Source: Obrimoposthia wandeli
Taxonomy: Eukaryota
DNA length: 64,000 nucleotides
Assembly: GCA_977020255.1 (NCBI GenBank)
Contig: CDROCS010001101.1
Location: 310,001-374,000 of the forward strand
Direction: 5' to 3'
Of this stretch, positions 1 to 12,217 are shown one piece after another (the stretch's first letter is position 1; every line of letters begins with the position of its first letter). The position numbers and the translations under genes were made by a program. The notes beneath the pieces were generated by a model that saw nothing but the letters and a program-made list of their open reading frames with translations, made no database searches and was not told the origin of the DNA.

Positions 1-422
1 TGAAAGAAATACTCTTTCGCGCAGCGGTTCGCGTAAAAGTGCCATTGGTATTGGTCGCAAACCATTGGATACGAGTCCCTGCGTCTCCATATATTTCAAT
101 GACCCAGGTACCATCAGGCTTTGATGTGGCAGATGATCACATTGTATTGAAAGTTGCTAAAGACGATCTGGTTATTACTTCTGACATTCCATTAGCCGCC
201 GAAGTTATCGAAAAAGGCGCACATGTGATCACGTCTCGTGGTGAAAAATACACGTTGAGTAATATTCGAGAGCGTCTTAATATGCGGGACTTTATGGATA
301 CGATGCGGGCAAGTGGTGAAAATACTGGGGGTCCACCAGCGTTAGGACCAAAAGATAAACAAGCATTTGGTAATGCGCTTGATCAATATCTTGCCAAGTA
401 CGCCAACAAAAGCAATGCGTAA
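1..422 (+). CDS. yaiI: YaiI/YqxD (DUF188, UPF0178) family protein, 5'-truncated by window edge
   Basis: Frame is open from base 3 ([20 protein letters not shown]...), so the real start is upstream of the window. Motifs [17 protein letters not shown] and [19 protein letters not shown] are typical of DUF188. Confidence 0.88.
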
Positions 423-445
423 TCATCCTGTACACTAAATCATTT

Positions 446-480
446 ATCTATAACAACCATCTATAGCAACCACCTATAGA
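446..480. repeat. Short degenerate 13-nt tandem repeat, about 2.7 copies
   Basis: atctataacaacc / atctatagcaacc / acctataga read directly in the yaiI-NYN intergenic region. Confidence 0.7.
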
Positions 481-503
481 AACGATGTAAACCGGAGCAG
501 CTT

Positions 504-977
504 GTGCAAAAAATAGCAGTGTTTGTTGACGTACAGAATATCTATTACACCACGCGTCAGAGTTATGGCCGTCAGTTTAATTATCGCAAGCTATGGCAGC
601 ATTTATTGCTACAAGGCGATGTTGTCACGGCTTACGCTTATGCCATTGATCGCGGTGATGATCAACAACGAAAATTTCAAGACGCACTGAAACATATTGG
701 CTTTGATGTAAAACTAAAGCCTTTTATCCAGCGTAGCGATGGCAGTGCCAAGGGTGATTGGGATGTAGGTATCACGATCGATGTATTACAAGTTGCAGAA
801 TCCGTTGATACCGTTGTATTACTTTCAGGCGATGGTGACTTTGCAATCTTACTCGATACGATCAAAGCACGTCATCAAGTCAGAGCTGAAGTATATGGCG
901 TACCGGCACTAACAGCGAATGCATTAATGAATAGTGCGACGGTGTTCAATCCAATTAATGAAGATTTTCTACTGTAG
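504..977 (+). CDS. NYN domain (LabA/DUF88) PIN-fold protein
   Basis: Motifs FVDVQN, KGDWDVGITID and LLSGDGDF. GTG start preceded by GGAG. Confidence 0.9.
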   Translation: MQKIAVFVDVQNIYYTTRQSYGRQFNYRKLWQHLLLQGDVVTAYAYAIDRGDDQQRKFQDALKHIGFDVKLKPFIQRSDGSAKGDWDVGITIDVLQVAESVDTVVLLSGDGDFAILLDTIKARHQVRAEVYGVPALTANALMNSATVFNPINEDFLL

Positions 978-1046
978 GTTTTAAATTGTAGATTGCCATT
1001 AACGCAAGCATTACGGACCACATATAAGCGTATTACAGATTGTTAG

Positions 1047-1080
1047 ATTCACGTTTTTTCTACAAATTGAATGTTAAATT
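1047..1080 (+). promoter_or_regulatory. Predicted gtrA promoter: OmpR/PhoB-type direct repeat plus extended -10
   Basis: TTCAC(1048-52)-N6-TCTAC(1059-63) lies at -39..-24 relative to TG-T-TAAATT (1072-80). Confidence 0.55.
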
Positions 1081-1111
1081 GGCTATTTACACAACTCACA
1101 GTCTAAAAAAT

Positions 1112-1501
1112 ATGAATCACAAGTATGTTAAATTTGCGCTGGTCGGTGGTATGGGGTTTATCGTCGATTTGTTGGCGATGATATTATTTTCAACATTCCT
1201 CCCATTATTAAGCGCTCGATTACTCGCATTTTTTTTTGCCGTAAACAGTAACTGGCTTTTAAATCGCAGTTTCACATTTAAAACTCAACAAGAGAATAGT
1301 AACGGCAGTTTGATGCAAGAGTGGAGTAAGTTTCTATCTGCATCTTGCGTTGGCGCAATTCCAAATCTGCTTTGCTATTGGTTATTAGTTACTGGGCTGT
1401 CACTCACAGGTAATACCGCGATCATCGCGATTATTCCGGGTATTATATTTGGCATGCTCGTTAATTACTTACTGGCAGACCGTTGGGTATTTAGTAAGTA
1501 A
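1112..1501 (+). CDS. GtrA family undecaprenyl-phosphate-sugar flippase
   Basis: KFALVGGMGFIVD, WLLNRSFTF and YLLADRWVF motifs with 4 hydrophobic segments. ATG 1112 is preferred over the track's TTG 1040 because the predicted promoter lies at 1047-1080. Confidence 0.88.
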   Translation: MNHKYVKFALVGGMGFIVDLLAMILFSTFLPLLSARLLAFFFAVNSNWLLNRSFTFKTQQENSNGSLMQEWSKFLSASCVGAIPNLLCYWLLVTGLSLTGNTAIIAIIPGIIFGMLVNYLLADRWVFSK

Positions 1502-1531
1502 TTAACTACTCTGACGGTATTATCAGTCGTA

Positions 1532-2785
1532 CTACAGAGATATAATGGCGCTACAGCCACCAGCGTCATTGTTTACCAGCTCAAATTGCCAGTTATATTT
1601 ACGGCAAATATCTCTAGTAATAAGTAATCCCAAGCCATGCCCTTCATCACCACGTTGCTTATGATAAAGGCCGCAGCCCGTGTCGTTCACTGAGATTGAT
1701 TGAGCATCAACAACAATATTGACCTCGCCAAGGCTTGTGCACCTAAACGCATTTTTTAATAAATTGCCCAATAAGAGCTTAAACGCAACTTCGGGCATTA
1801 TTATTTCAATATCCTGCTTTATCTCAATGTTAACAACAACAGGTTTGGTATTTAATAAGGCACTATGGGTATCAACAATTGCCATTATTTCTGCTTTACT
1901 GAGCTTGCGATGGGACAGTTCTAAATCTTTTTCAGATTTTGTTAAGGATAACAGCGCCTCTATAAAGTCATTCATTTCATTTGTAGCACTTTGTAAACGC
2001 GTTTGCTGTTTTTTAATAAATTCAGGTTCATTACTGTAGCTCAGCAAATTGGTAGCGCCCTTCATGACCATGAGTGGCGTACGCAATTCATGGCTCGCCA
2101 TACGATTAAAGGCACGTTCTCGTTCGATTAACGCGTTTTTCTGTTGTTGATTCTTATTATAACTATCAACAAGCTGAAGCAGTTCTTTAGTAGCGATACC
2201 CGGTGGTAACTCAATATCACTAGTATCATCCGGTGAGCGACTTGCTATTTGTTTAGCAAACACAGAGATGGGAGCCGTTAAGCGTTCAGAGATCCGCATA
2301 ACAACGAGTAGCGCAATCAGTAAAAGTACCAATGAAATCAAAGATTGCCATGATTGAGTCCACATGATCTCTTCTTCACCGAGTTCAAACGCAGGATCAT
2401 TATGGACAACATAAATAAACTGTTCTTGTTTATTCGAAGTTGCTAGTTTCATCAAAAAGAATTCTGTACCTAAAGAATTACTTTGCTGGATCTCGATAGC
2501 TTCATCAATAGGCAAAAATATATTTTCATCCACGAGATCAGGCAATGTCACACGGTCCATATAACCAGTCGTAAACTCATCAATTTTAAACGAGCGGCTT
2601 TCCTGACTCAGTTTTGACTTTTCAACAATAGATTCTTTTTGTAACAAGAGTCTATTTTGAATACTTAATTTCTCAATACTTTCCAACGTAGAATCAAGTA
2701 CGGTCCCGTGGATCAAGATGATCACAAACGCGACAATTGAAAAATAAATAAATGTAAGCTGTTTAGCCGAATGTACCTTCGCCAT
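1532..2785 (-). CDS. Sensor histidine kinase, ColS-like (TM-periplasm-TM-HAMP-HisKA-HATPase)
   Basis: H-box FNRMASHELRTPL, N-box GNLLKNA, G1 DTGCG, G2 GHGLGL, two TM segments, and periplasmic FELGE before TM2. Confidence 0.88.
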   Translation of the reverse strand: MAKVHSAKQLTFIYFSIVAFVIILIHGTVLDSTLESIEKLSIQNRLLLQKESIVEKSKLSQESRSFKIDEFTTGYMDRVTLPDLVDENIFLPIDEAIEIQQSNSLGTEFFLMKLATSNKQEQFIYVVHNDPAFELGEEEIMWTQSWQSLISLVLLLIALLVVMRISERLTAPISVFAKQIASRSPDDTSDIELPPGIATKELLQLVDSYNKNQQQKNALIERERAFNRMASHELRTPLMVMKGATNLLSYSNEPEFIKKQQTRLQSATNEMNDFIEALLSLTKSEKDLELSHRKLSKAEIMAIVDTHSALLNTKPVVVNIEIKQDIEIIMPEVAFKLLLGNLLKNAFRCTSLGEVNIVVDAQSISVNDTGCGLYHKQRGDEGHGLGLLITRDICRKYNWQFELVNNDAGGCSAIISL

Positions 2786-2799
2786 ATTGAACCCTAAGT

Positions 2800-3477
2800 T
2801 TAACGATTTACAGAGACAAGTTGATAACCAATTTTTGATAGGGTTTTAATATAGTGCTGCTGAAAAGGCTTATCAACTTGGTTACGTAATTGGTAAATAT
2901 GACTACGAAGAATATCGCCTTCTGGTTCATCCTCGCCCCAAATGGCATTAATTATTTCATTTTTAGTGACAATTTCTGGGGTTCTCATCATGAGTAATTT
3001 TAATATCGTAAATTGAGTAGGATTAAGCTCAAAATTACAACCATTACGAGAGGCTATATGGGTTTTTAAATCGAGTGATAATTCTTCAAACGATAGGATT
3101 TTAGCCGCATTTTTACCACTACGTCGGCGATGTAGTGCTTGAATTCGAGCACCTAGAATATCAAGATCAAATGGTTTAATAAGGTAATCATCAGCACCAC
3201 AATCAAAACCTGCCAGTGTATCTTCACGGGTATCACGTGCGGTTAACATTAAGATAGGCGTGTCATCACCCTGCTCTCTTAGTTTTTGACAGACTGTGAG
3301 TCCATCCATACGGGGCATTTGAACATCCAAAATGATTAAATCATAATAATTGTTACTCGCAAGTTCATAACCCTGAACACCATCCTGTGCATAATCTAAG
3401 GTGTAACCTTTGATTTCAAAAAAATCAAAAATGATCCCCGCTATATCTTGATGATCTTCAACTAACAATATTTTCAT
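2800..3477 (-). CDS. OmpR-family response regulator, ColR-like
   Basis: MKILLVED, LIILD, MLTARD and GADDYLIKPF. The C-terminus LNP...WGEDEPEGDILRSHIYQLRNQVDKPF closely resembles ColR as I recall it. Confidence 0.92.
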   Translation of the reverse strand: MKILLVEDHQDIAGIIFDFFEIKGYTLDYAQDGVQGYELASNNYYDLIILDVQMPRMDGLTVCQKLREQGDDTPILMLTARDTREDTLAGFDCGADDYLIKPFDLDILGARIQALHRRRSGKNAAKILSFEELSLDLKTHIASRNGCNFELNPTQFTILKLLMMRTPEIVTKNEIINAIWGEDEPEGDILRSHIYQLRNQVDKPFQQHYIKTLSKIGYQLVSVNR

Positions 3478-3510
3478 AATAGCTTAACCCAATAAATTGA
3501 TTACACCTTT

Positions 3511-3563
3511 ATTATGCCAAATACCATGTCGAATTAATGTAAAAATGTAAAAAACTTGTCGAA
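3511..3563 (-). promoter_or_regulatory. Predicted autoregulated promoter of the RR-HK operon with two direct-repeat boxes
   Basis: Minus strand: TCGAC-N6-TTTAC (3562-3547), then TTTAC-N6-TCGAC (3543-3528, at -39..-24), then TG-G-CATAAT (3519-3511). Confidence 0.55.
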
Positions 3564-3571
3564 AACATTTA

Positions 3572-3608
3572 TTCCACATGACCTTCACTAAAATGAGCAT
3601 ATTAGAAT
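3572..3608 (+). promoter_or_regulatory. Predicted promoter of the GT2-ArnT operon with a direct-repeat box
   Basis: TCCAC(3573-77)-N6-TTCAC(3584-88) upstream of TAGAAT (3603-08). Confidence 0.5.
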
Positions 3609-3626
3609 CCACTTCGGAATTTTCAT

Positions 3627-4718
3627 ATGCCAGCCAGTATTACATCCATTACAGAGCATCGCGATGTCCTTAAAGCCAAAACAACGCCTTTATTGTCTAT
3701 CGTCATTCCGTTTTTCAATGAAGATGAAGTGCTAAGCGAATGTCACCAACGGGTTGTCGCTGTACTTGATACATTATCTGAACCGTGCGAAATCATTTAT
3801 GTGGATGACGGCAGCAGTGATAAATCATGGGCACAAGTAATCAATTTCACAGCCAATAATCATACCGTACGCTGTATTAAACTGAGTCGTAATTTTGGTA
3901 AAGAATCAGCGATGACAGCAGGCATGATAAATACAACGGCTCGCGCTGTTATCTTACTCGACGCAGATTTACAAGATCCACCAGAACTCATCCCTGAAAT
4001 GGTTAGTGAATGGGAAAATGGCTATGATGTCGTTAACATGCAACGTAAACAGCGTCATGGTGAAAATTGGCTGAAACGTTCAACAGCCTATCTATTTTAT
4101 AAAGTCATTAATCGTTTAGCTGATATTGAGATGCCACGTAATGTAGGAGACTTTAGATTATTAGATCGTAAGGTCGTTGATGTGATTAACGCATTGCCAG
4201 AACGTAATCGTTTTATGAAGGGCTTACTTTCATGGCCTGGATTTAATACTTGTACGCTGCAATTTGATCGTGACGCCCGTCAAGCTGGTACCACTAAATG
4301 GAACTACGCAAAACTGATCCATCTTGCATTTGAAGGGATCACATCTTTTAGTATTCGACCATTACGTATCGCTACAGCCGCAGGTCTAGTTGCCTCTGTA
4401 ATATCTGTAATGATGGCGATTTTCCTTGTCAGTAAAACACTGTTCTGGGGTGATCCTGTAGCTGGTTACCCCTCATTAATGACCGTAGTGCTATTACTTG
4501 GTGGTATGCAGCTGTTATCTATTGGTTTAATGGGTGAGTATGTGGGCCGCTTATTTATCGAATCAAAACAACGTCCTAACTTTGTTGTCATGAATGAAAG
4601 TTGTACCACGCCAAATGTAAACGTCACCTCGCATAATCATGTTAACCAAAGCATTCATCAAAGTACCTATCAAACACATAACGCAAACTTTAAACAAGGC
4701 TCGTCTTCACATGTCTAA
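3627..4718 (+). CDS. GT2 polyprenol-phosphate glycosyltransferase (GtrB/ArnC/YfdH-like)
   Basis: SIVIPFFNE, YVDDGSSD, LSRNFGKESA, LDADLQDPP, GDFRLLDR, RFMKGL and two C-terminal TM helices followed by GEYVGR. Confidence 0.93.
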   Translation: MPASITSITEHRDVLKAKTTPLLSIVIPFFNEDEVLSECHQRVVAVLDTLSEPCEIIYVDDGSSDKSWAQVINFTANNHTVRCIKLSRNFGKESAMTAGMINTTARAVILLDADLQDPPELIPEMVSEWENGYDVVNMQRKQRHGENWLKRSTAYLFYKVINRLADIEMPRNVGDFRLLDRKVVDVINALPERNRFMKGLLSWPGFNTCTLQFDRDARQAGTTKWNYAKLIHLAFEGITSFSIRPLRIATAAGLVASVISVMMAIFLVSKTLFWGDPVAGYPSLMTVVLLLGGMQLLSIGLMGEYVGRLFIESKQRPNFVVMNESCTTPNVNVTSHNHVNQSIHQSTYQTHNANFKQGSSSHV

Positions 4719-6189
4719 AGCAGTAAATCATTTATCTTTAACCAAAATAGCCATCACCTTAGTGGTGACAGCAATCGCGATCAGATTATTTACCCTTGGT
4801 TTTTTTCCGCTCATGGATACTACCGAGGCTCGGTATGGCGAAATGGCCAGGATCATGGCTGAAACTGGTAACTGGATCACACCAATGTTCGATTACAACG
4901 TACCATTTTGGGGGAAACCACCATTATTTACTTGGATGAGCGCGGCGGGTATTTCGATATTTGGATTAAACGAATTTGCAGTTCGGATCCCACACCTACT
5001 CGCAGGTGGATTAATATTATCACTCGTTGGTTTACTCGCTTATAGCATAGTACCATCACTAAGCCGTTTAGAACGAAAGCAAGAAGGCTGGTTAGCTGCT
5101 GGTATCTTAGCGACAACAGCGACCTTTATTGTGGTCACTGGTGCTGTGATGACTGACACTGCCCTCACGTTAGGTATTACCCTTAGCATGGTTGCATTTT
5201 GGCTGAACTATAAAAATAAATCAGCCTTATGGGGACATTTATTTTTTATTGGTCTGACAATCGGTATGTTAGCAAAGGGACCTCTCGCATTAGTCTTGAT
5301 TGGTATAAGCTTATTTATATGGGCGCTGTTTAATAAAACGTGGATGAGCATGTTCCGTAGTTTACCCTGGAAAACCGGTATTCCACTGTTTCTTGCAACC
5401 AGCTTACCTTGGTATATCATCGCAGAATATTCATCTCCGGGTTTCCTTAACTACTTTATCGTTGGCGAGCATATCAAACGTTTCCTCGTGAGCGGCTGGC
5501 AAGGTGATTTATACGGTACAGCACACAAAGAGATCAAAGGGACAATCTGGGTATTTGCGATTGTGTCTGCCCTACCTTGGACGCCTATATTTATTTACCA
5601 ATGGGTTAAAAGTTTACAGATAACCATCAACACGAAGCGTGACTCAAAAGTACAAGAAGAAGACGATAGCATTGAGCTTAACTATACGAGTTTTTTGTGG
5701 GCTTGGTTATTATCACCACTATTACTATTTACATTTAGTGGCAATATTCTTTCGAGTTATGTGATGCCTTGCTTACCGGCGTTTGCTTTATTGATGGTGA
5801 CTTACCAGCGTAACAACCCATTATCGAGTAAAGTATATAAAACAGGGTTTATTGCACCGGTATTAATTTTGATTATTGCTATCTTATTACGTACTGAAAT
5901 AACGAGTAAACAGTCTGAAAAAGGCTTGATGCAAGCTTGGTCAAAACAAGCTCAGAATAGCGAGTTAATCTATATAGACAAACGACCATTCTCAGCTCAA
6001 TTTTATTCTCGAGGCGTCGCAGTTGAACGTAAAATAAAACTCGAAGTTGCAGTACAAGACATCACTAAAGACACCTATTTTGTTATACGTAAATCAAACG
6101 AAACGAAATTTTTAATCAAGAGCTTACCACAGTGTAAACTTATCAAAGAAGCGAAAAAACGTGTACTGGTATTCTGTACCGCACGTTAA
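4711..6189 (+). CDS. ArnT/PMT-like (GT-C fold) lipid-carrier-dependent glycosyltransferase
   Basis: DTTEARYGEMARIMAETGNWITP, FWGKPPL and LAKGP motifs, many TM segments. ATG 4711 overlaps the GT2 stop and is preferred to the track start at 4639. Confidence 0.9.
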   Translation: MSKAVNHLSLTKIAITLVVTAIAIRLFTLGFFPLMDTTEARYGEMARIMAETGNWITPMFDYNVPFWGKPPLFTWMSAAGISIFGLNEFAVRIPHLLAGGLILSLVGLLAYSIVPSLSRLERKQEGWLAAGILATTATFIVVTGAVMTDTALTLGITLSMVAFWLNYKNKSALWGHLFFIGLTIGMLAKGPLALVLIGISLFIWALFNKTWMSMFRSLPWKTGIPLFLATSLPWYIIAEYSSPGFLNYFIVGEHIKRFLVSGWQGDLYGTAHKEIKGTIWVFAIVSALPWTPIFIYQWVKSLQITINTKRDSKVQEEDDSIELNYTSFLWAWLLSPLLLFTFSGNILSSYVMPCLPAFALLMVTYQRNNPLSSKVYKTGFIAPVLILIIAILLRTEITSKQSEKGLMQAWSKQAQNSELIYIDKRPFSAQFYSRGVAVERKIKLEVAVQDITKDTYFVIRKSNETKFLIKSLPQCKLIKEAKKRVLVFCTAR

Positions 6190-6257
6190 TGATAATTCAT
6201 ATCCGTGATAGCTAGTCATTAAGCTATTCACAAGATTTCCATTAATAGCATCACCTG

Positions 6258-6297
6258 ATGCAAGTTAGTGATATACACTAACTTGCATTTTTTGTTT
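6258..6297 (+). terminator. Intrinsic terminator of the GT2-ArnT operon
   Basis: Perfect 13-bp stem atgcaagttagtg/cactaacttgcat followed by a T-rich tract. Confidence 0.8.
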
Positions 6298-6375
6298 AAA
6301 ATTCACTATATAGCATGATATGAAAGGCTTAAATAACCTACACTAGTAAGATACATAACTTACTGAGTAGCCTAT

Positions 6376-7281
6376 ATGCATATATTAATTACGGGAGGTA
6401 CTGGCTTCATCGGCCAAGCATTTATTAATACCTTCCAGTCTGATTATGATTTTACCGTATTAACTCGTAATATCAGTAACGCCAAACGTACATTTGCACA
6501 TATACCGAGTCATAACATAAAGTTCATCACGCAATTTAATGAATTACCAGATGAAATCCATATCGATGCAGTCATCAATCTAGCTGGTTCACCTATTATG
6601 GATAAAATGTGGAGCGACAAACACAAACATGTTCTGGAATCGAGTCGTTGGGAAATAACCCAACAGCTGGTTGATTTAATATCAGCCAAGACAATCACGC
6701 CAAGCGTATTTATCAGTGGTTCAGCCATTGGTATTTACGGTCGTCAAGATGATCAGATTATTGATGAACAATACCAAGATTACCACCCAGAATACTCTAG
6801 CCACTTGTGCGAACATTGGGAAGAAACAGCTCGAGCAGCCAGCCCGTTAACCCGTACCGCAATAATGAGAACAGGCATTGTATTGGCTAAAGATAAAGGC
6901 GCTTTACAAAAAATGGCCTTGCCGTTTAAATTAGGACTTGGTGGCCCTATCGGGCAAGGGAAGCAATATATGTCTTGGATACATATTGATGATATGGTCT
7001 CAGCAATGAATTATTTATTACAAAACAATTCGCTCTCTGGCACATTTAATCTTACCGCACCAAACGCTGTCACCAATCGTGATTTTTCAACTCAATTGGC
7101 CGCTTGCTTTGATAAAAAAGCACGTTTCACAACGCCAACACTGGTATTACGTTTATTACTCGGCGAGCGTGCGGACCTGATTATTTATGGGCAACGTGTC
7201 ATACCAACACACCTAGTAGATTCAGGTTTTAAATTTAAGTATGATACGTTAGACCAAGCATTCTCAGAAATTTATGCTTAA
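6376..7281 (+). CDS. yfcH: TIGR01777 family NAD-dependent epimerase/oxidoreductase (DUF1731)
   Basis: ILITGGTGFIG, VINLAG, FISGSAIG, GPIGQGKQYMSWIHIDD, FNLTAP. Confidence 0.92.
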   Translation: MHILITGGTGFIGQAFINTFQSDYDFTVLTRNISNAKRTFAHIPSHNIKFITQFNELPDEIHIDAVINLAGSPIMDKMWSDKHKHVLESSRWEITQQLVDLISAKTITPSVFISGSAIGIYGRQDDQIIDEQYQDYHPEYSSHLCEHWEETARAASPLTRTAIMRTGIVLAKDKGALQKMALPFKLGLGGPIGQGKQYMSWIHIDDMVSAMNYLLQNNSLSGTFNLTAPNAVTNRDFSTQLAACFDKKARFTTPTLVLRLLLGERADLIIYGQRVIPTHLVDSGFKFKYDTLDQAFSEIYA

Positions 7282-7619
7282 TACTCACGCTTTCTTGCTA
7301 GTCTAATTGCGTCGAATATATTCACTAACCAGACACAAAGTAACATAACAGTGGCATAGTAAACACCTTGAGTATCAAGACTTGCCATCTGTTGTGTCAC
7401 CAATGTATTTATACTCAGTACATCAATCTGCCCGCCAGACTGCAGCACCTTATCGATGATTAATTGTGTTTGTGTCATGGTGACATCTATAATCACATAG
7501 AGCGGTATCACGGCTGCAATTGCAAATACACCTGCCAGTATATATCGCTTTAACCACCAATGTGCCGCACCAGGAAACAAGAACGCAGCCAACAGACCTG
7601 CTTTAACAATATTACTCAT
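7278..7619 (-). CDS. Small conserved membrane protein (DUF6677-like)
   Basis: AAFLFPGAAHWWLKRY start, three hydrophobic segments, NIFDA end. Confidence 0.7.
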   Translation of the reverse strand: MSNIVKAGLLAAFLFPGAAHWWLKRYILAGVFAIAAVIPLYVIIDVTMTQTQLIIDKVLQSGGQIDVLSINTLVTQQMASLDTQGVYYATVMLLCVWLVNIFDAIRLARKREY

Positions 7620-7637
7620 AAACCATCCTAAATGAAT

Positions 7638-9242
7638 TCAACTAGCGATAAACAGTAGTGGTAATAGTAACAGACACAAAGAGTGAAATGTAACGCGCAT
7701 TGGTTTAAAGACAAAACCGAGCATAAATAGAATAAAGATAAGCACGCTAGCATTCGGATAAACACCACTGATTAGTTGCTCTTGCTCGAGCCAAATAGCA
7801 TCATTTACCGTTACCCTTGCCCAAATAGCTTGAATTCGATTTAAAACATCATTCACAATCATGAGTAATAGACCGCTAACCTTCGGGGTGATACCAACTA
7901 AGAGCACGGCTATCAACAACACGGGTAATACAAATACACTAAAAATAGGAATGAAAATCAAGTTGATGATGACAGAGATTAAGCTAACGCCCGAGAACAC
8001 CGACAGTTGCATCGGCAACATAAATAATGTCAATAGTACTTGGCTATGGCAAAGGTATACTAGCTTGCTTACAACTGCCTGTGCCGCCAATTTAATACGA
8101 TAACACTTGATACGATACCAAACTGCAATCACATTACCTTGCTTATCTAGCTCATTCACCTCACTCTTTTCACCAACATGGCTCTGCTGTTTGTTTAGCC
8201 AAACCAATATAAAGACAGCAGCCATAGCGAAAAAGGATAACCAAAAGCTAACCGAGAATGCCGTCAATGGATCGACGACTAAGGTAACCAACAGCATAAT
8301 AGAAAACAACTGTAACAACGTTACTTTATAATATTGCAGTCGATAAAGGCTGTGGATACCCAATAAAATGATCGCCCTTAACGCTGGTAACGAAAACCCC
8401 GCTATCCACGCATAAAATAGAGCTGCGAGCAAACTAAGCACTAAAGTAATACTTAGTTGATAAGGCTGATTAAATACTCTCAATAATGGCTGTATACAGG
8501 CATAAAAAAAGCCAAATATAAGCCCTATATGCAAACCAGAGATAGCCACAAGGTGCCCAATCCCTAATAATTTAAACTGCGTCCATAATTCATTACTAAT
8601 GTAACTCCTATCACCAAAACTTAACGCATACAGCATAGGGTTACTGTTGTCAGGCAAAATTGATTTAAATACTTGGTACAACTCCCCACGTAAACTAAAC
8701 TTAGAGTTGATTATTTCGCCTTTATCAATAAAACCGGTATAACGTATATGATGTGCTAATAATCTCGATTCTTTGGTATCGATAAGGCGTACCTTAAATC
8801 GCCATACTTGACCAATACCTAAGTCTCCTTCGTAGTGGTACTCTGGGTTTAGCCACTTTAACCTAAGCTTTGGCTGATAATAAGGCGTCTCCTGACCATT
8901 AATGTCAATGACGTTCACATCAAACGAAAGTCGATTTTTATTATTTACTAATGTTATTAGTTCGGCTGTTATGATATTGTCTTCAACTACTCTTTTTGAT
9001 GATTCTTTGTATTGCCACTTTGTATTAAGCAGTAACATATTTGCTTCATTTATGACGTTATTTTTATATATTACAGACCAAGACAGAGTAATAAACAGCA
9101 ATACTAATATAGGTGTTATCTTCAAGTAAAAAATGGTAAAGGCAGCGACTGCCATTATCGTAATATATTCAATACGTTCGATATCAATAAAGAACATACT
9201 TATTAATATGGTAATGGAAAGTAATATGGCCTTAAAGGGCAT
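7638..9242 (-). CDS. comEC: ComEC/Rec2 DNA uptake channel, short form without the metallo-beta-lactamase domain
   Basis: LSFGDRS, HLVAISGLHIG, GFSLPALRA, SFWLSF and NLIFIP competence-domain motifs. The ORF ends at 534 aa after a TM helix. Confidence 0.88.
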   Translation of the reverse strand: MPFKAILLSITILISMFFIDIERIEYITIMAVAAFTIFYLKITPILVLLFITLSWSVIYKNNVINEANMLLLNTKWQYKESSKRVVEDNIITAELITLVNNKNRLSFDVNVIDINGQETPYYQPKLRLKWLNPEYHYEGDLGIGQVWRFKVRLIDTKESRLLAHHIRYTGFIDKGEIINSKFSLRGELYQVFKSILPDNSNPMLYALSFGDRSYISNELWTQFKLLGIGHLVAISGLHIGLIFGFFYACIQPLLRVFNQPYQLSITLVLSLLAALFYAWIAGFSLPALRAIILLGIHSLYRLQYYKVTLLQLFSIMLLVTLVVDPLTAFSVSFWLSFFAMAAVFILVWLNKQQSHVGEKSEVNELDKQGNVIAVWYRIKCYRIKLAAQAVVSKLVYLCHSQVLLTLFMLPMQLSVFSGVSLISVIINLIFIPIFSVFVLPVLLIAVLLVGITPKVSGLLLMIVNDVLNRIQAIWARVTVNDAIWLEQEQLISGVYPNASVLIFILFMLGFVFKPMRVTFHSLCLLLLPLLFIAS

Positions 9243-9270
9243 TCATTACCCCTGACATTTGATTAGAATT

Positions 9271-9789
9271 ATGCCTAAGAATTTAATTAAAAAATATCTC
9301 CCAAACCCTGAATCAATCAAAGAACATAAGCATCTTAGAATCTTTGGTGATTTACTAAATAACGCAAACCTTTGGCACTTAAATCGCCGCTCAGCTGCTG
9401 GTGCTTTTGCTGTTGGTCTATTTATGGCCTTTGTACCAGTGCCTTTCCAGATGTTGCTGGCAGCTGGTTTTGCCATTTTATTTCGTGTTAACTTACCGCT
9501 CTCTGTCGCCCTTGTATGGCTATCTAACCCAGTGACTATGCCACCGATGTTTTATGCCACTTATGTCTTAGGCGCGTGGATATTACAAGTACCCGTACAT
9601 CCATTCTCCTTTGAATTAACAATGGAATGGCTGATACAGGCAATATCGTTATATGGCCCTGCTTTTTTACTAGGCTGCTTTGTATCTGGTACATTCTTTT
9701 CTATTCTTGGTTATTTTAGTATCCGCTGGCTATGGCGCTGGAAAATAATCAATGCATGGAACAAACGTAAAGAGTCACGCACAAAATAA
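9271..9789 (+). CDS. DUF2062 domain membrane protein
   Basis: NLWHLNRRSAAGAFAVGLF, NLPLSVALVWLSNPVTMPP. ATG 9271 (MPKNLIKKYLP) is preferred to TTG 9259. Confidence 0.9.
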   Translation: MPKNLIKKYLPNPESIKEHKHLRIFGDLLNNANLWHLNRRSAAGAFAVGLFMAFVPVPFQMLLAAGFAILFRVNLPLSVALVWLSNPVTMPPMFYATYVLGAWILQVPVHPFSFELTMEWLIQAISLYGPAFLLGCFVSGTFFSILGYFSIRWLWRWKIINAWNKRKESRTK

Positions 9790-9803
9790 CAATTGAAAAT
9801 GCG

Positions 9804-9840
9804 AAGGCCACAGCACTAAACCAGTGATGTGGCCTTTTTT
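9804..9840 (+). terminator. Intrinsic terminator after the DUF2062 gene
   Basis: aaggccaca...tgtggcctt stem followed by a T run. Confidence 0.8.
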
Positions 9841-10064
9841 ATGTTCTATGTTCTTTGACGAATTTGGACAATGAGTGCATGCGAGCTATCTTGACGATCT
9901 CCAGACCGCAGTTTTTATCAGCTGTAAAGGGCATGAATGTCGAGTTAGGCTAGCGTAATAAATATAGTTGTAAAAAGGTAAGGAGCATGGGTAAGGCTAG
10001 ATATGATAGAGCAGGACGCTAAACTGTGGCCAAATCCGTTGACCACAAAGTTATAATTTATTCG

Positions 10065-10457
10065 TTATTCTTCAATACCGTCTTTAATAAACCAAACGTT
10101 AGTAAAGCCTAGTTTAGTAAAATGATTTTTACGGAACTCTCTGACAGATTTAGTACCCTTAGATACATCTTCAACTTGTTTTTCCATCATCATATATTGC
10201 GTTAGATCGATCCCTTCTTCTGCAGCAACTGCTTCATAAATATGGTGAAACTTGCGATATGAGAATGGAATCTTCTTATCTTCTTTGTTATAAGTATAGG
10301 TAACTAGGTGGGCCAAAATGCCTCCAAATAATAATTGAATTCGATAGTCGTTTAACGAATATCGAGATCTTACTGATAATTTATCAAAATTGAACTGATA
10401 ATTTGTGCAGATAATACCACACTCGCCCCTTTCGTCAAAAGTTGAGTCTGGTATCAC
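10065..10457 (-). CDS. AT-rich hypothetical ORF or gene fragment
   Basis: Open frame of 130 codons from GTG 10457, 13 nt after the ycfH stop. No strong SD and no recognisable motif. An imperfect hairpin (tgtggccaa...ttgaccaca) lies near 10025-10047. Confidence 0.4.
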   Translation of the reverse strand: MIPDSTFDERGECGIICTNYQFNFDKLSVRSRYSLNDYRIQLLFGGILAHLVTYTYNKEDKKIPFSYRKFHHIYEAVAAEEGIDLTQYMMMEKQVEDVSKGTKSVREFRKNHFTKLGFTNVWFIKDGIEE

Positions 10458-10470
10458 GCTTATGTCGATA

Positions 10471-11244
10471 TTACTTTTTAGCGTTAAACAGCTTAAAGTA
10501 GTTATCTGTTGTTGTTTCTGCGAGTTCAGCAAAGCTTACACCGCGCAACTCAGCAACAAACTCCGCAACAGCTCGTACATACGCTGGTTGATTCTCTTTA
10601 CCACGGTACGGAACAGGCGCGAGGTATGGAGAGTCCGTTTCAACAAGTAAACGGTCAGCTGGAATTGTCTTCACAACTTCTTGTAAATCTTTCGCTGATT
10701 TAAATGTCACAATACCAGAAATAGAGATATAAAAGCCCATTTCTAATACCGCAGCAGCCATCGCATCAGATTCAGTGAAACAATGGATAACACCGCCAAT
10801 TTGCTCTGCACCTTCTTCTTTTAAGATGCGGATAGTATCGTCAACAGCACCACGGGTATGAATAATCAGCGGTTTTTTTAGTTCAATAGCCACTTGAATG
10901 TGATTACGGAATGACGCTTGCTGAATATCCTTATTTTCAGGTGAATAGAAATAATCTAAACCCGTTTCACCAATAGCAACGACTTTTTCATTTTGTGCTA
11001 ATGCCAATAACTCTGACTTTTCGTACTCATCTTCAAGGTTAAGTGGATGAACACCACACGAAGCGTGAATATTATCAAAATCAGCAATCAATTCGATCAT
11101 CGTTTTAAAACGCGGCAATGTGACTGACACGCTAAGTAAGTGTGAAACACCGCGTTCAGTTGCTTTGTTCACAACGTCCGCAAGGTCGGTATGAATGGTA
11201 TCGTAATTTAATCCATCTAAATGGCAATGAGAATCTACTAGCAT
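10471..11244 (-). CDS. ycfH: TatD family DNase YcfH
   Basis: DSHCHLD, GVHP, AIGETGLDY, PLIIHTR, GVIHCF, LVETDSPYLAP. Confidence 0.95.
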   Translation of the reverse strand: MLVDSHCHLDGLNYDTIHTDLADVVNKATERGVSHLLSVSVTLPRFKTMIELIADFDNIHASCGVHPLNLEDEYEKSELLALAQNEKVVAIGETGLDYFYSPENKDIQQASFRNHIQVAIELKKPLIIHTRGAVDDTIRILKEEGAEQIGGVIHCFTESDAMAAAVLEMGFYISISGIVTFKSAKDLQEVVKTIPADRLLVETDSPYLAPVPYRGKENQPAYVRAVAEFVAELRGVSFAELAETTTDNYFKLFNAKK

Positions 11245-11245
11245 A

Positions 11246-12217
11246 TTAATTTATAAATCTTTTAAGTTTGATCAAAAAGGACAGCACTAAGGTCTCAGCC
11301 GTTAAATTATTATTTTGCATTAATAACTGACGAAGCTCTGTTAGTTCTGATTGTAGTTGAGTAATCTTATCTGCTGATAATTGTGTGGAAAAATGCGTTA
11401 ACCACTCTAGTTGGTCAGTATTAACAATATAATCAATACTCACTCCTCGAGCCACTTTCTGTAAATCCAGTAAGATAAATTGTAACCAAGATAATTTTTC
11501 TAATGTTCGGTCTGAAATAATTTCACATAAACGTGTAATAGCCGCTGGCTGTTGCGTTAACAAGGCGATATTAGAAAATATCTCTTTACGTAAATCATCA
11601 TCGCCATTATTTAAATAACTTAGCGTGTGTAAAGGTGCGCCATGATTAACCCGGATCGCAGTCAACGTAGGACTTTCAATCGGGAACTGCTGTTGCAACC
11701 AAGTTAATGTATCTTGCTCTGCTGGTGCTGGCAGGTGTAATTTCTGACAACGGCTAAAAATTGTCGGCAATACTTGCGCTTTATTTTCAGCAAGTAAAAT
11801 AATATAACTGCCATCACTCGGCTCTTCTAACGTTTTAAGTAAGGCGTTAGCTGACGCGAGATTAAAACTTTCAGCATGCTCGATGATCACAACCTTATTA
11901 CCGCCAAGTTGTGAGTGTTCATTTAACTTCTGGCTGATGTTACGGATTAGATCAACACCAATGACTTTACCCGGCTCTGTAGAAACCAAGTAATAATCAG
12001 GATGTACACTGGTCTCGAATAACTGACATGGGTGACAATCATGACAAGGTTCCCAACCGATAGGCTCTTTACAGAGTAACGTTTGAGCTAGCACCTGTGC
12101 GTAAGACAACTTCCCCATACCGTTAGGACTGGTAATAAACAAAGCATGATGCAAACGACCCGCTGTCATTTGCGTTTGCTGTTTTTCCCAATGCGGTAAT
12201 AACCAAGGATATAGCAT
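11246..12217 (-). CDS. holB: DNA polymerase III subunit delta-prime
   Basis: GRLHHALFI, C-C-C-C zinc motif, HPD, ASANALLKTLEEP, TIFSRCQ. Confidence 0.95.
   Translation of the reverse strand: MLYPWLLPHWEKQQTQMTAGRLHHALFITSPNGMGKLSYAQVLAQTLLCKEPIGWEPCHDCHPCQLFETSVHPDYYLVSTEPGKVIGVDLIRNISQKLNEHSQLGGNKVVIIEHAESFNLASANALLKTLEEPSDGSYIILLAENKAQVLPTIFSRCQKLHLPAPAEQDTLTWLQQQFPIESPTLTAIRVNHGAPLHTLSYLNNGDDDLRKEIFSNIALLTQQPAAITRLCEIISDRTLEKLSWLQFILLDLQKVARGVSIDYIVNTDQLEWLTHFSTQLSADKITQLQSELTELRQLLMQNNNLTAETLVLSFLIKLKRFIN

Follow-up and report, generated by a model that had tools for sequence, protein, structure and literature searches.

Two-component control of a lipid-linked, three-component pathway of envelope glycosylation is a known kind of system, as seen in PmrAB with the arn genes, in ColRS with the PP0035-PP0034-PP0033 genes (PP0035-33) of Pseudomonas putida, and in RaxRH, which adjoins an arnT-like gene (PMC8306577). 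The GtrA family gene PP0035 has a footprinted ColR site and is both bound and activated by ColR in P. putida (PMC2689224), and the P. putida ColR footprints gave Kivistik et al. a 16-nt consensus, (T/C)(T/C)NA(C/G)NN(T/C)TTTTT(C/G)AC, referred to below as the ColR box (PMC2689224). At 1.5 mM zinc, PP0033 is upregulated 54-fold and PP0035 127-fold, and PP0035-33 are among the most strongly Zn-induced envelope genes listed for P. putida KT2440 (PMC6066579). Deletion of PP0035-33 lowers the minimal inhibitory concentration (MIC) of Zn from 5 to 4 mM, and this is the sole ColR-regulated locus tested, besides colR itself, whose single deletion cut the Zn MIC (PMC4074579). The kinase ColS of P. putida has a periplasmic loop of 96 aa, and an FExRE motif (E126/E129) at the end of this loop, beside the second transmembrane helix (TM2), is required for the sensing of Zn and Fe(III) (PMC4074579). 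ColS/ColR is characterised by its activation when Zn, Fe(III), Mn or Cd is in excess. No report on the product of the PP0035-33 triad was found in the literature searched. Here we compare with these systems a five-gene unit at positions 1048-6297 of a 64-kb stretch of DNA from contig CDROCS010001101.1 (assembly GCA_977020255.1, Obrimoposthia wandeli), the whole of which is termed the window.

The balance of the evidence tilts towards this unit being a cassette that regulates itself and glycosylates the cell envelope by way of three components. Its wiring, consisting of a sensor, a regulator, an operator and three enzymes, is well supported by comparative sequence analysis, and a listing of open reading frames (ORFs) together with family scans confirmed the order gtrA (+), sensor histidine kinase (HK, -), OmpR-type response regulator (RR, -), a glycosyltransferase of family 2 (GT2, +), a glycosyltransferase of the GT-C type (GT-C, +) and a terminator. 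A preliminary description, made from the letters of the window, had read these genes as a lipid-linked sugar synthase, a flippase and a periplasmic GT-C transferase around their own two-component system, and this arrangement proved to be real and conserved as a unit, as judged from 80 loci and co-diverging trees. The features of the unit are the following.

1048-1063 (+): ColR-type box TTCACGTTTTTTCTAC, 14/16 to the ColR consensus, 64 nt 5' of the gtrA ATG
1112-1501 (+): gtrA, PF04138 GtrA_DPMS_TM, E 1e-23, 84.2 bits vs a gathering score of 26.1
1532-2785 (-): sensor histidine kinase, 417 aa, HisKA and HATPase_c domains
2800-3477 (-): OmpR-family response regulator, 225 aa, Response_reg and Trans_reg_C domains
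3547-3577 (no strand assigned): palindromic operator between RR and GT2, GTAAAAAACTTGTCGA / AAACATTTATTCCAC, a degenerate copy of GTGAAAAAAATGTCA-W-TGACATTTTTTTCAC
3589-3594 (+): likely -10 hexamer TAAAAT of the predicted GT2/GT-C promoter, with TAnnnT conserved across genera
3627-4718 (+): GT2 polyprenyl-phosphate glycosyltransferase, GtrB-like, PF00535, E 7.5e-31
4711-6189 (+): GT-C of the PP0033 subfamily, predicted ArnT-like fold, 492 aa, PF02366 PMT, 85 bits
6257-6297 (+): intrinsic terminator of the GT2/GT-C operon, hairpin 6257-6289 with a 14-bp stem, then a T-run

The gtrA ATG at 1112 is internal to an ORF that opens at a TTG at 1040, and the product is a small four-helix membrane protein, the presumed flippase of the lipid-linked sugar. 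The GT-C ORF opens at 4639, upstream of its ATG at 4711, and this ATG and the GT2 stop codon overlap by 8 nt (ATGTCTAA). The terminator has a predicted energy of -19.2 kcal/mol (z = -5.85 vs shuffled sequences). The five genes lie as the preliminary description had mapped them, while its start at 1047 coincides with the ColR-type box at 1048-1063 and not with the start of a gene.

Evidence that the five genes belong together came from a comparison set of 80 loci in about 20 genera, which was drawn from at least 566 confirmed GT-C relatives and retrieved via the GT-C alignment; gene orders were found by mapping the window proteins onto these loci, and recurrence by clustering every ORF there. 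The five unit families were the sole recurrent gene families, occurring in 80, 77, 73, 72 and 66 of the 80 loci (gtrA being the one present in 66), and the next commonest neighbour family was found in 20 loci, exclusively in Vibrio. Three gene orders were seen. Order A, that of the window (gtrA> <HK <RR / GT2> GT-C>), is found in Moritella, Photobacterium, Psychromonas, Marinomonas, Oceanospirillum and Salinisphaera, and also in Enterovibrio and Grimontia in a form without gtrA nearby (none within 10 kb; L012, L013, L016-L018, L030). Order B (<HK <RR / GT2> GT-C> gtrA>) is that of Vibrio and Shewanella, and order C (<gtrA / GT2> GT-C> RR> HK>) that of Colwellia, Cognaticolwellia, Pseudoalteromonas, Psychrosphaera and others. 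The surroundings of the unit vary. The RR tree and the GT-C tree contain the same three clades, which match the three gene orders, and hence the sensor pair and the enzymes diverged together. As far as gene content, gene order and phylogeny can tell, these data demonstrate joint inheritance of the five genes.

Two variations on the unit were seen in the course of this comparison. Photobacterium damselae (L014) has a reduced unit of RR, HK and GT-C, without GT2 or gtrA nearby. In Photobacterium and Psychromonas, a gene for a DUF368/VCA0040-like undecaprenyl-phosphate translocase (PF04018, E 9e-104) adjoins gtrA (L003:5383-6294 on the minus strand, and likewise L004-L010 and L019), and this translocase may recycle the carrier that is released by GT-C in the periplasm.

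The regulatory sequences of the unit were recognised by comparison between genera. An alignment of the RR/GT2 intergenic regions contains a 31-nt palindrome, GTGAAAAAAATGTCA-W-TGACATTTTTTTCAC, which in most genera begins about 80 nt 5' of the GT2 ATG and both halves of which are the 16-nt consensus of P. putida ColR. Of 70 module intergenic regions, 24 contain the exact consensus, a density of 2.3 per kb, compared with 0.033 per kb in the other non-coding DNA of the same loci, an enrichment of about 70-fold. In the window, the left half of the operator (3547-3562) agrees with the consensus at 14 of 16 positions. A TAnnnT motif is conserved 42 nt after the start of the operator in the cross-genus alignment and, given this position, the right half of the operator overlaps the -35 element of the predicted GT2/GT-C promoter. 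In order A, where gtrA is transcribed separately, a box of its own lies about 40-110 nt 5' of the gtrA ATG, as in Moritella, Photobacterium (16/16), Psychromonas, Oceanospirillum and Marinomonas, and none was found where gtrA comes after GT-C in the operon. The gtrA box of the window is the top match in the 64 kb (19.0 bits) with a matrix built from the operators of other genera. The alignments therefore demonstrate that a box of the kind to which ColR binds in Pseudomonas is conserved in both predicted promoters, that of GT2/GT-C and that of gtrA.

How closely the sensor pair resembles ColRS was judged against a reference on a P. aeruginosa plasmid (L088:2452-11999), where a complete ColRS-type lipid A-remodelling locus lies beside a Tn3 transposase. 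At this locus, PAP2 and a sulfatase-family gene are transcribed divergently from RR, HK, a methyltransferase gene, an InaA-type kinase gene, DgkA and a second sulfatase-family gene, and there are exact ColR boxes at 5965 (-) and 7942 (+). It was validated as ColRS-type by this synteny (the divergent PAP2 and the downstream methyltransferase and InaA-kinase genes), by FEARE before TM2 of a kinase with a loop of about 99 aa, and by the exact boxes. No ColR or ColS sequence is present in the PDB.

The window kinase is of the EnvZ type with two transmembrane helices, TM1 at about residues 12-30 and TM2 at about 148-166, which enclose a periplasmic loop of about 117 aa. The sequence FELGEEE (134-140) directly before TM2 contains ExxE and lacks the Arg of FExRE; an invariant Glu and acidic residues before TM2 are found in all three clades, and ExxE is strict in the clade of the window. 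BLAST aligns the kinase with the ColS-type reference only from residue 123 on, at 27% identity, and detected no ColS-like loop sequence. The regulator is 46% identical to its counterpart in the reference, and its recognition helix, LRSHIYQLRNQVDKPF, closely resembles LRSHIHQLRQVLDKPF of the reference, with BasR having LEVHIHNLRDKVGKA. In the RR tree, which took in the plasmid locus L088 as the ColR-type reference and not the chromosomal ColR of P. putida or P. aeruginosa, the module regulators form a clade of their own (support 97) inside a group (support 98) with ColR-like regulators, and this larger group also holds the L088 reference, a Xanthomonas regulator, the module regulator of a Marinobacter plasmid and a regulator linked to mcr-8, while BasR/QseB and CusR of E. 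coli fall outside it. A word search from a module regulator labelled Salinisphaera (L033) returned marine relatives at no less than 54% identity as all of its best 120 matches, with no Pseudomonas among these. Neither the window nor any of the 80 loci has an lpxE/PAP2, methyltransferase or InaA-kinase gene next to the sensor pair.

These comparisons demonstrate, as regards motifs, operators and phylogeny, that the kinase and regulator are ColRS-like, and the term as used in the preliminary description holds for the ExxE beside TM2, the ColR-type boxes, the recognition helix and the position of the module clade as sister to the plasmid reference. It may not extend to membership: in the tree with the plasmid reference the module clade is not nested within a ColR clade, and the kinase identity is low. 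We read the window pair not as ColRS itself but as a lineage sister to ColRS that shares its DNA specificity. With regard to the regulator linked to mcr-8, which belongs to the same well-supported group as the ColR-like and module regulators, the order on a Klebsiella pneumoniae plasmid (L094:1346-6944) is mcr-8.2, IS3, regulator, kinase and dgkA, and a regulator with 43% identity to that of the window is found on 59 Klebsiella plasmids.

The two glycosyltransferases are related to different well-known enzymes. GT2 has a DADLQD motif (DxD) in a GT2 catalytic domain that is followed by C-terminal membrane helices, and it gives 325 bits over residues 17-322 to Synechocystis GtrB (sll0501, PDB 5EKP) vs 163 bits to ArnC, which refines the earlier map of the unit by placing this protein much nearer GtrB than ArnC. 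Its scores to the NCBIfam models PgfS (297 bits) and ArnC (181 bits) are both under cut-off. On these alignments GT2 is clearly GtrB-like. Its C-terminal tail (window 4600-4715), about 40 aa long, is rich in His, Asn and Gln and includes five His; similar tails are found only in other Moritella, those of other genera being unrelated low-complexity sequence, and the tail was ruled out as a feature of the family.

For GT-C, the sole sequence match in the PDB is ArnT of C. metallidurans (CmArnT; E 1.6e-15), and identity to E. coli ArnT is 27%. The protein scores 123.8 bits with the NCBIfam ArnT equivalog (NF009784), the cut-off of which is 567. No arnA, arnB, arnC, arnD, arnE or arnF gene was found in the window region or in the recurrent gene set of the 80 loci. 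The AlphaFold2 (AF2) model of GT-C (pLDDT 87.6, pTM 0.89) has a membrane core of the ArnT type and, at the C-terminus, a periplasmic domain, and its top match in Foldseek is ArnT (5F15; E 6e-17, TM-score 0.72), with ALG12 the next fold at 1.7e-6 and the PMT enzymes weaker still. The CmArnT residues K85, R270 and Y345 at the carrier phosphate correspond to invariant K69, R257 and Y350 in GT-C, R58 and K203 to invariant R41 and K189, and H267 to H254, which is also kept; an invariant D149 lies near the position of CmArnT D158. The motifs that define the subfamily (DT[TS]E.RY, VPFWGKPP, GEH..R[FY] and W.GDLYG..H) are absent from E. coli ArnT and are all shared with the PP0033-like family 39 glycosyltransferase (GT39) of a P. 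putida plasmid locus (L081). Model and motifs together demonstrate that GT-C has a predicted ArnT fold and belongs to the subfamily of P. putida PP0033. That the P. putida ColR regulon includes a gtrA/GT2/GT-C operon had been noted in the preliminary description, correctly so in view of the PP0035 footprint (PMC2689224), the induction by zinc and the MIC effect, and the GT-C of that operon is of the same subfamily. A gtrA/B/II cluster of Pseudomonas donghuensis was considered as a further relative and rejected, being of the phage GtrII type, which is another family.

The claim that such a cassette is portable was supported by related copies on conjugative and mobilizable plasmids. On the P. 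putida plasmid (L081), a LysR gene, gtrA, GT2 and GT39, with the exact published PP0035 ColR box in front, lie between czcA, a P-type ATPase gene, a heavy-metal sensor pair and a CDF transporter gene in a czc/cadA island. A 16.6-kb mobilizable MOBQ plasmid of Pantoea agglomerans (L082:838-10026) has a TolC-like gene and czcB/czcA (czcCBA), followed by gtrA, GT2, GT39 and IS26, and is a case of a metal-efflux operon fused to a glycosylation triad on a small plasmid. On a conjugative plasmid of Marinobacter, gtrA-GT2-GT39-RR-HK has a sulfatase-family gene, MntP and DmeF as neighbours, and an Alteromonas plasmid carries PAP2, a sulfatase-family (EptA-like) gene, a hydrolase gene, GT2, GT39, a GtrA-sized gene and DgkA. 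On a conjugative Paracoccus plasmid (L086:4615-9776), the order is <HK <RR / GT39 GT2 GtrA with mer genes alongside; its regulator is outside the ColR-like group, no ColR box was found at the locus, and this triad appears to have recruited a different sensor. By analogy, the plasmid contexts support mobility, a connection to metals and lipopolysaccharide (LPS) as the target.

The mechanism that we propose for the cassette is as follows. The kinase would sense a periplasmic cue through the acidic ExxE patch beside TM2, the cue being most likely an excess of cations of the Zn/Fe type, and would phosphorylate the regulator. The regulator would then bind the palindromic operator over the -35 element of the GT2/GT-C promoter and the single box of gtrA, thereby activating both, and it probably also autoregulates its own divergent operon. 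At the cytoplasmic face, GT2 would use a nucleotide sugar of the housekeeping pool, most likely UDP-glucose, to form an undecaprenyl-phosphate-hexose; a housekeeping hexose, probably glucose or another common hexose, is proposed because the unit holds no sugar-modifying gene, and when the 80 loci were searched for genes of sugar tailoring or additional lipid A genes belonging to the unit, there were none besides the five. GtrA would flip the lipid-linked sugar, which GT-C would then pass on, on the periplasmic side, to an acceptor that is most likely lipid A or the LPS inner core. The added sugar would mask anionic sites and so lower the binding of cations. While the wiring has firm comparative support, cations as the cue and lipid A or inner core as the acceptor are each probable. 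The preliminary description had likewise taken metal or membrane stress as the putative signal and the envelope as the putative target. A more far-reaching proposal, which we make tentatively and which may well be wrong, is that the cassette is a cation-triggered shield, an undescribed modification in which a probably uncharged hexose is placed on the anionic sites of lipid A or inner core, and that it represents a widespread mobile trait. The range of such a trait would cover marine Gammaproteobacteria (many Vibrio, Aliivibrio and Shewanella), metal-resistance plasmids and the metal island of P. putida.

Several observations weigh against this interpretation of the unit. The effect of PP0035-33 on zinc tolerance is small. 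The kinase loop is about 117 aa vs 96-99 aa in ColS, the kinase identity is 27%, and the clades of Vibrio and Colwellia keep ExxE only loosely. The operator of the window is degenerate and scores 11.8 bits, under the best score in shuffled sequence; a call of the operator from the window alone failed for this reason, and it was recognised by cross-genus alignment only. The identity of GT2 to the glucose-transferring GtrB is 55%, which is insufficient to fix the sugar. In GT-C, E84 and H265 of CmArnT are replaced by G68 and G252, D55 is replaced by T38, and the first Asp is an invariant D36 two residues upstream; since GT-C lacks E84 and H265 and has a shifted first Asp, its acceptor could differ from that of ArnT.

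Four alternatives have to be weighed, the first of which leaves the cassette as proposed and changes its trigger. A trigger unrelated to excess metal (for example cationic peptides, pH, low temperature or pressure, or general damage to the outer membrane) would fit a kinase whose periplasmic domain has no detectable similarity to ColS beyond the motif, the degenerate ExxE in two clades, the lack of metal genes around the marine chromosomal loci and the different regulator family of the Paracoccus copy. The invariant Glu and acidic patch beside TM2 in all clades speak for a metal cue, as do the plasmid copies among Zn/Cd/Co/Hg/Mn genes and the strong zinc induction of the Pseudomonas counterpart, and we regard a different trigger as somewhat unlikely.

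With the same wiring, GT-C might instead decorate the outer core, O-antigen or another surface polysaccharide, in the manner of phage Gtr systems, which we consider improbable. A GtrB-like GT2 with a GtrA flippase are the classic partners in serotype conversion. ArnT-fold enzymes that glycosylate core sugars exist in the Rgt enzymes of Rhizobium and provide a precedent, and the missing E84 and H265 of CmArnT would agree with such an acceptor. The third enzymes of the phage type, GtrC/GtrII, are unrelated to GT-C in sequence, however, and in the fold comparison ArnT outscores every other GT-C enzyme by 10 orders of magnitude. Moreover, the unit adjoins O-antigen or capsule genes in no genus among the 80 loci, and the triad of the Alteromonas plasmid sits among lipid A enzymes.

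It is very unlikely that GT-C is a PMT-like protein O-glycosyltransferase which modifies periplasmic or outer-membrane proteins under stress. This would be consistent with the Pfam match of GT-C to the PMT family, with the NCBI names of its relatives ('glycosyltransferase family 39') and with the score of GT2 to PgfS, for which the only name that NCBIfam gives is glycosyltransferase. PgfS has been linked to a pathway of protein glycosylation in streptococci. PMT structures match the GT-C model over partial length with E values of about 1e-5 to 1e-2, vs 6e-17 for ArnT, the MIR domain typical of eukaryotic PMTs is absent from GT-C, and the unit contains no conserved gene for a candidate substrate.

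That the two-component system merely neighbours the glycosylation genes and controls other targets is scarcely credible, as the pair is adjacent to them in three gene orders at more than 70 loci, co-diverges with GT-C and has a conserved operator in the shared intergenic region, even though the triad occurs without an adjacent sensor pair in L032, L034, L042, L047 and L073 and the Pseudomonas regulator is unlinked to the triad.

The five genes are flanked in the window by genes for YaiI, an NYN-domain protein, a yfcH-like oxidoreductase (after the terminator) and a ComEC-like protein, none of which is related to the unit. The ComEC-like ORF (7638-9242, minus strand, 534 aa) has the Competence domain as the sole Pfam domain reported, and its conservation among Moritella (62-65%) is below that of its neighbours. 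The nearest relatives of GT-C are those of Moritella, at 84-96% identity. With respect to island boundaries near this Moritella copy, there are no tRNA genes in positions 1-12000 and the GC content is even; integrases and repeats were not screened.

In keeping with the preliminary description, which knew of no account of such a cassette in Moritella-like bacteria, literature searches on the cassette in Moritella and other marine genera found none, and searches on Moritella lipid A enzymes and on links between undecaprenyl-phosphate-glucose, ArnT-like enzymes and zinc found nothing relevant. The literature searched is likewise without an embedded, co-diverging sensor pair, a palindromic ColR-type operator shared across orders, the breadth of the distribution and the plasmid copies. 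Sensor-controlled remodelling of LPS shapes tolerance to metals and cationic peptides. The triad described here is widespread, often with its own ColRS-like sensor and with a ColR-type operator across bacterial orders, and it travels on plasmids beside genes for metal efflux and lipid A modification. It also offers a compact and genetically clean system (one sensor, one operator and three enzymes) for finding both the modification and its trigger, and, if the proposal is true, this wiring of one sensor and one operator would let the chemistry of the PP0033-35 family, which has been open since 2009, be solved.

The unit shares parts with each of four groups of known systems. The GtrA/GtrB/GtrC systems and the Gram-positive CsbB/GtcA/YfhO have homologues of GtrA and GtrB and the same division of labour, but the third enzyme of the window unit has the predicted ArnT fold and is not of the phage GtrC type, and the cassette is chromosomal or plasmid-borne with its own sensor and is not a prophage module for serotype conversion. 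The ArnT/ArnC/ArnEF system, which is controlled by PmrAB and places 4-amino-4-deoxy-L-arabinose (Ara4N) on lipid A, follows the same logic in that a lipid-linked sugar made by a GT2 enzyme is flipped and then transferred by a GT-C of the same fold, and the undecaprenyl-phosphate-binding residues of ArnT are kept in the window GT-C. The window unit nevertheless falls far under the ArnT and ArnC equivalog cut-offs, lacks arnA, arnB and arnD and uses GtrA rather than ArnE/F as the flippase, and the sugar of the cassette is probably neutral rather than cationic, unlike Ara4N.

On the regulatory side, ColS/ColR of Pseudomonas and RaxH/RaxR of Xanthomonas have in common with the window pair an EnvZ/OmpR architecture, ExxE by TM2, the ColR-type box and a similar recognition helix, and, like the window unit as proposed, they control envelope-modifying genes; the window pair differs in a loop about 20 aa longer, in the lack of adjacent lpxE/PAP2, eptA and InaA-kinase genes and in an RR clade of its own. 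With PP0035-PP0034-PP0033 the window unit shares the same triad of GtrA, GT2 and GT-C, the motifs of GT-C and the same type of regulator box upstream. In P. putida, however, the triad forms a single operon within a czc/cadA island and its regulator genes are located elsewhere, beside PAP2 and PP0903-0905, whereas the unit in the window, at a GT-C identity of about 37%, has an embedded, dedicated sensor pair of a sister clade, a palindromic operator and a separate gtrA.

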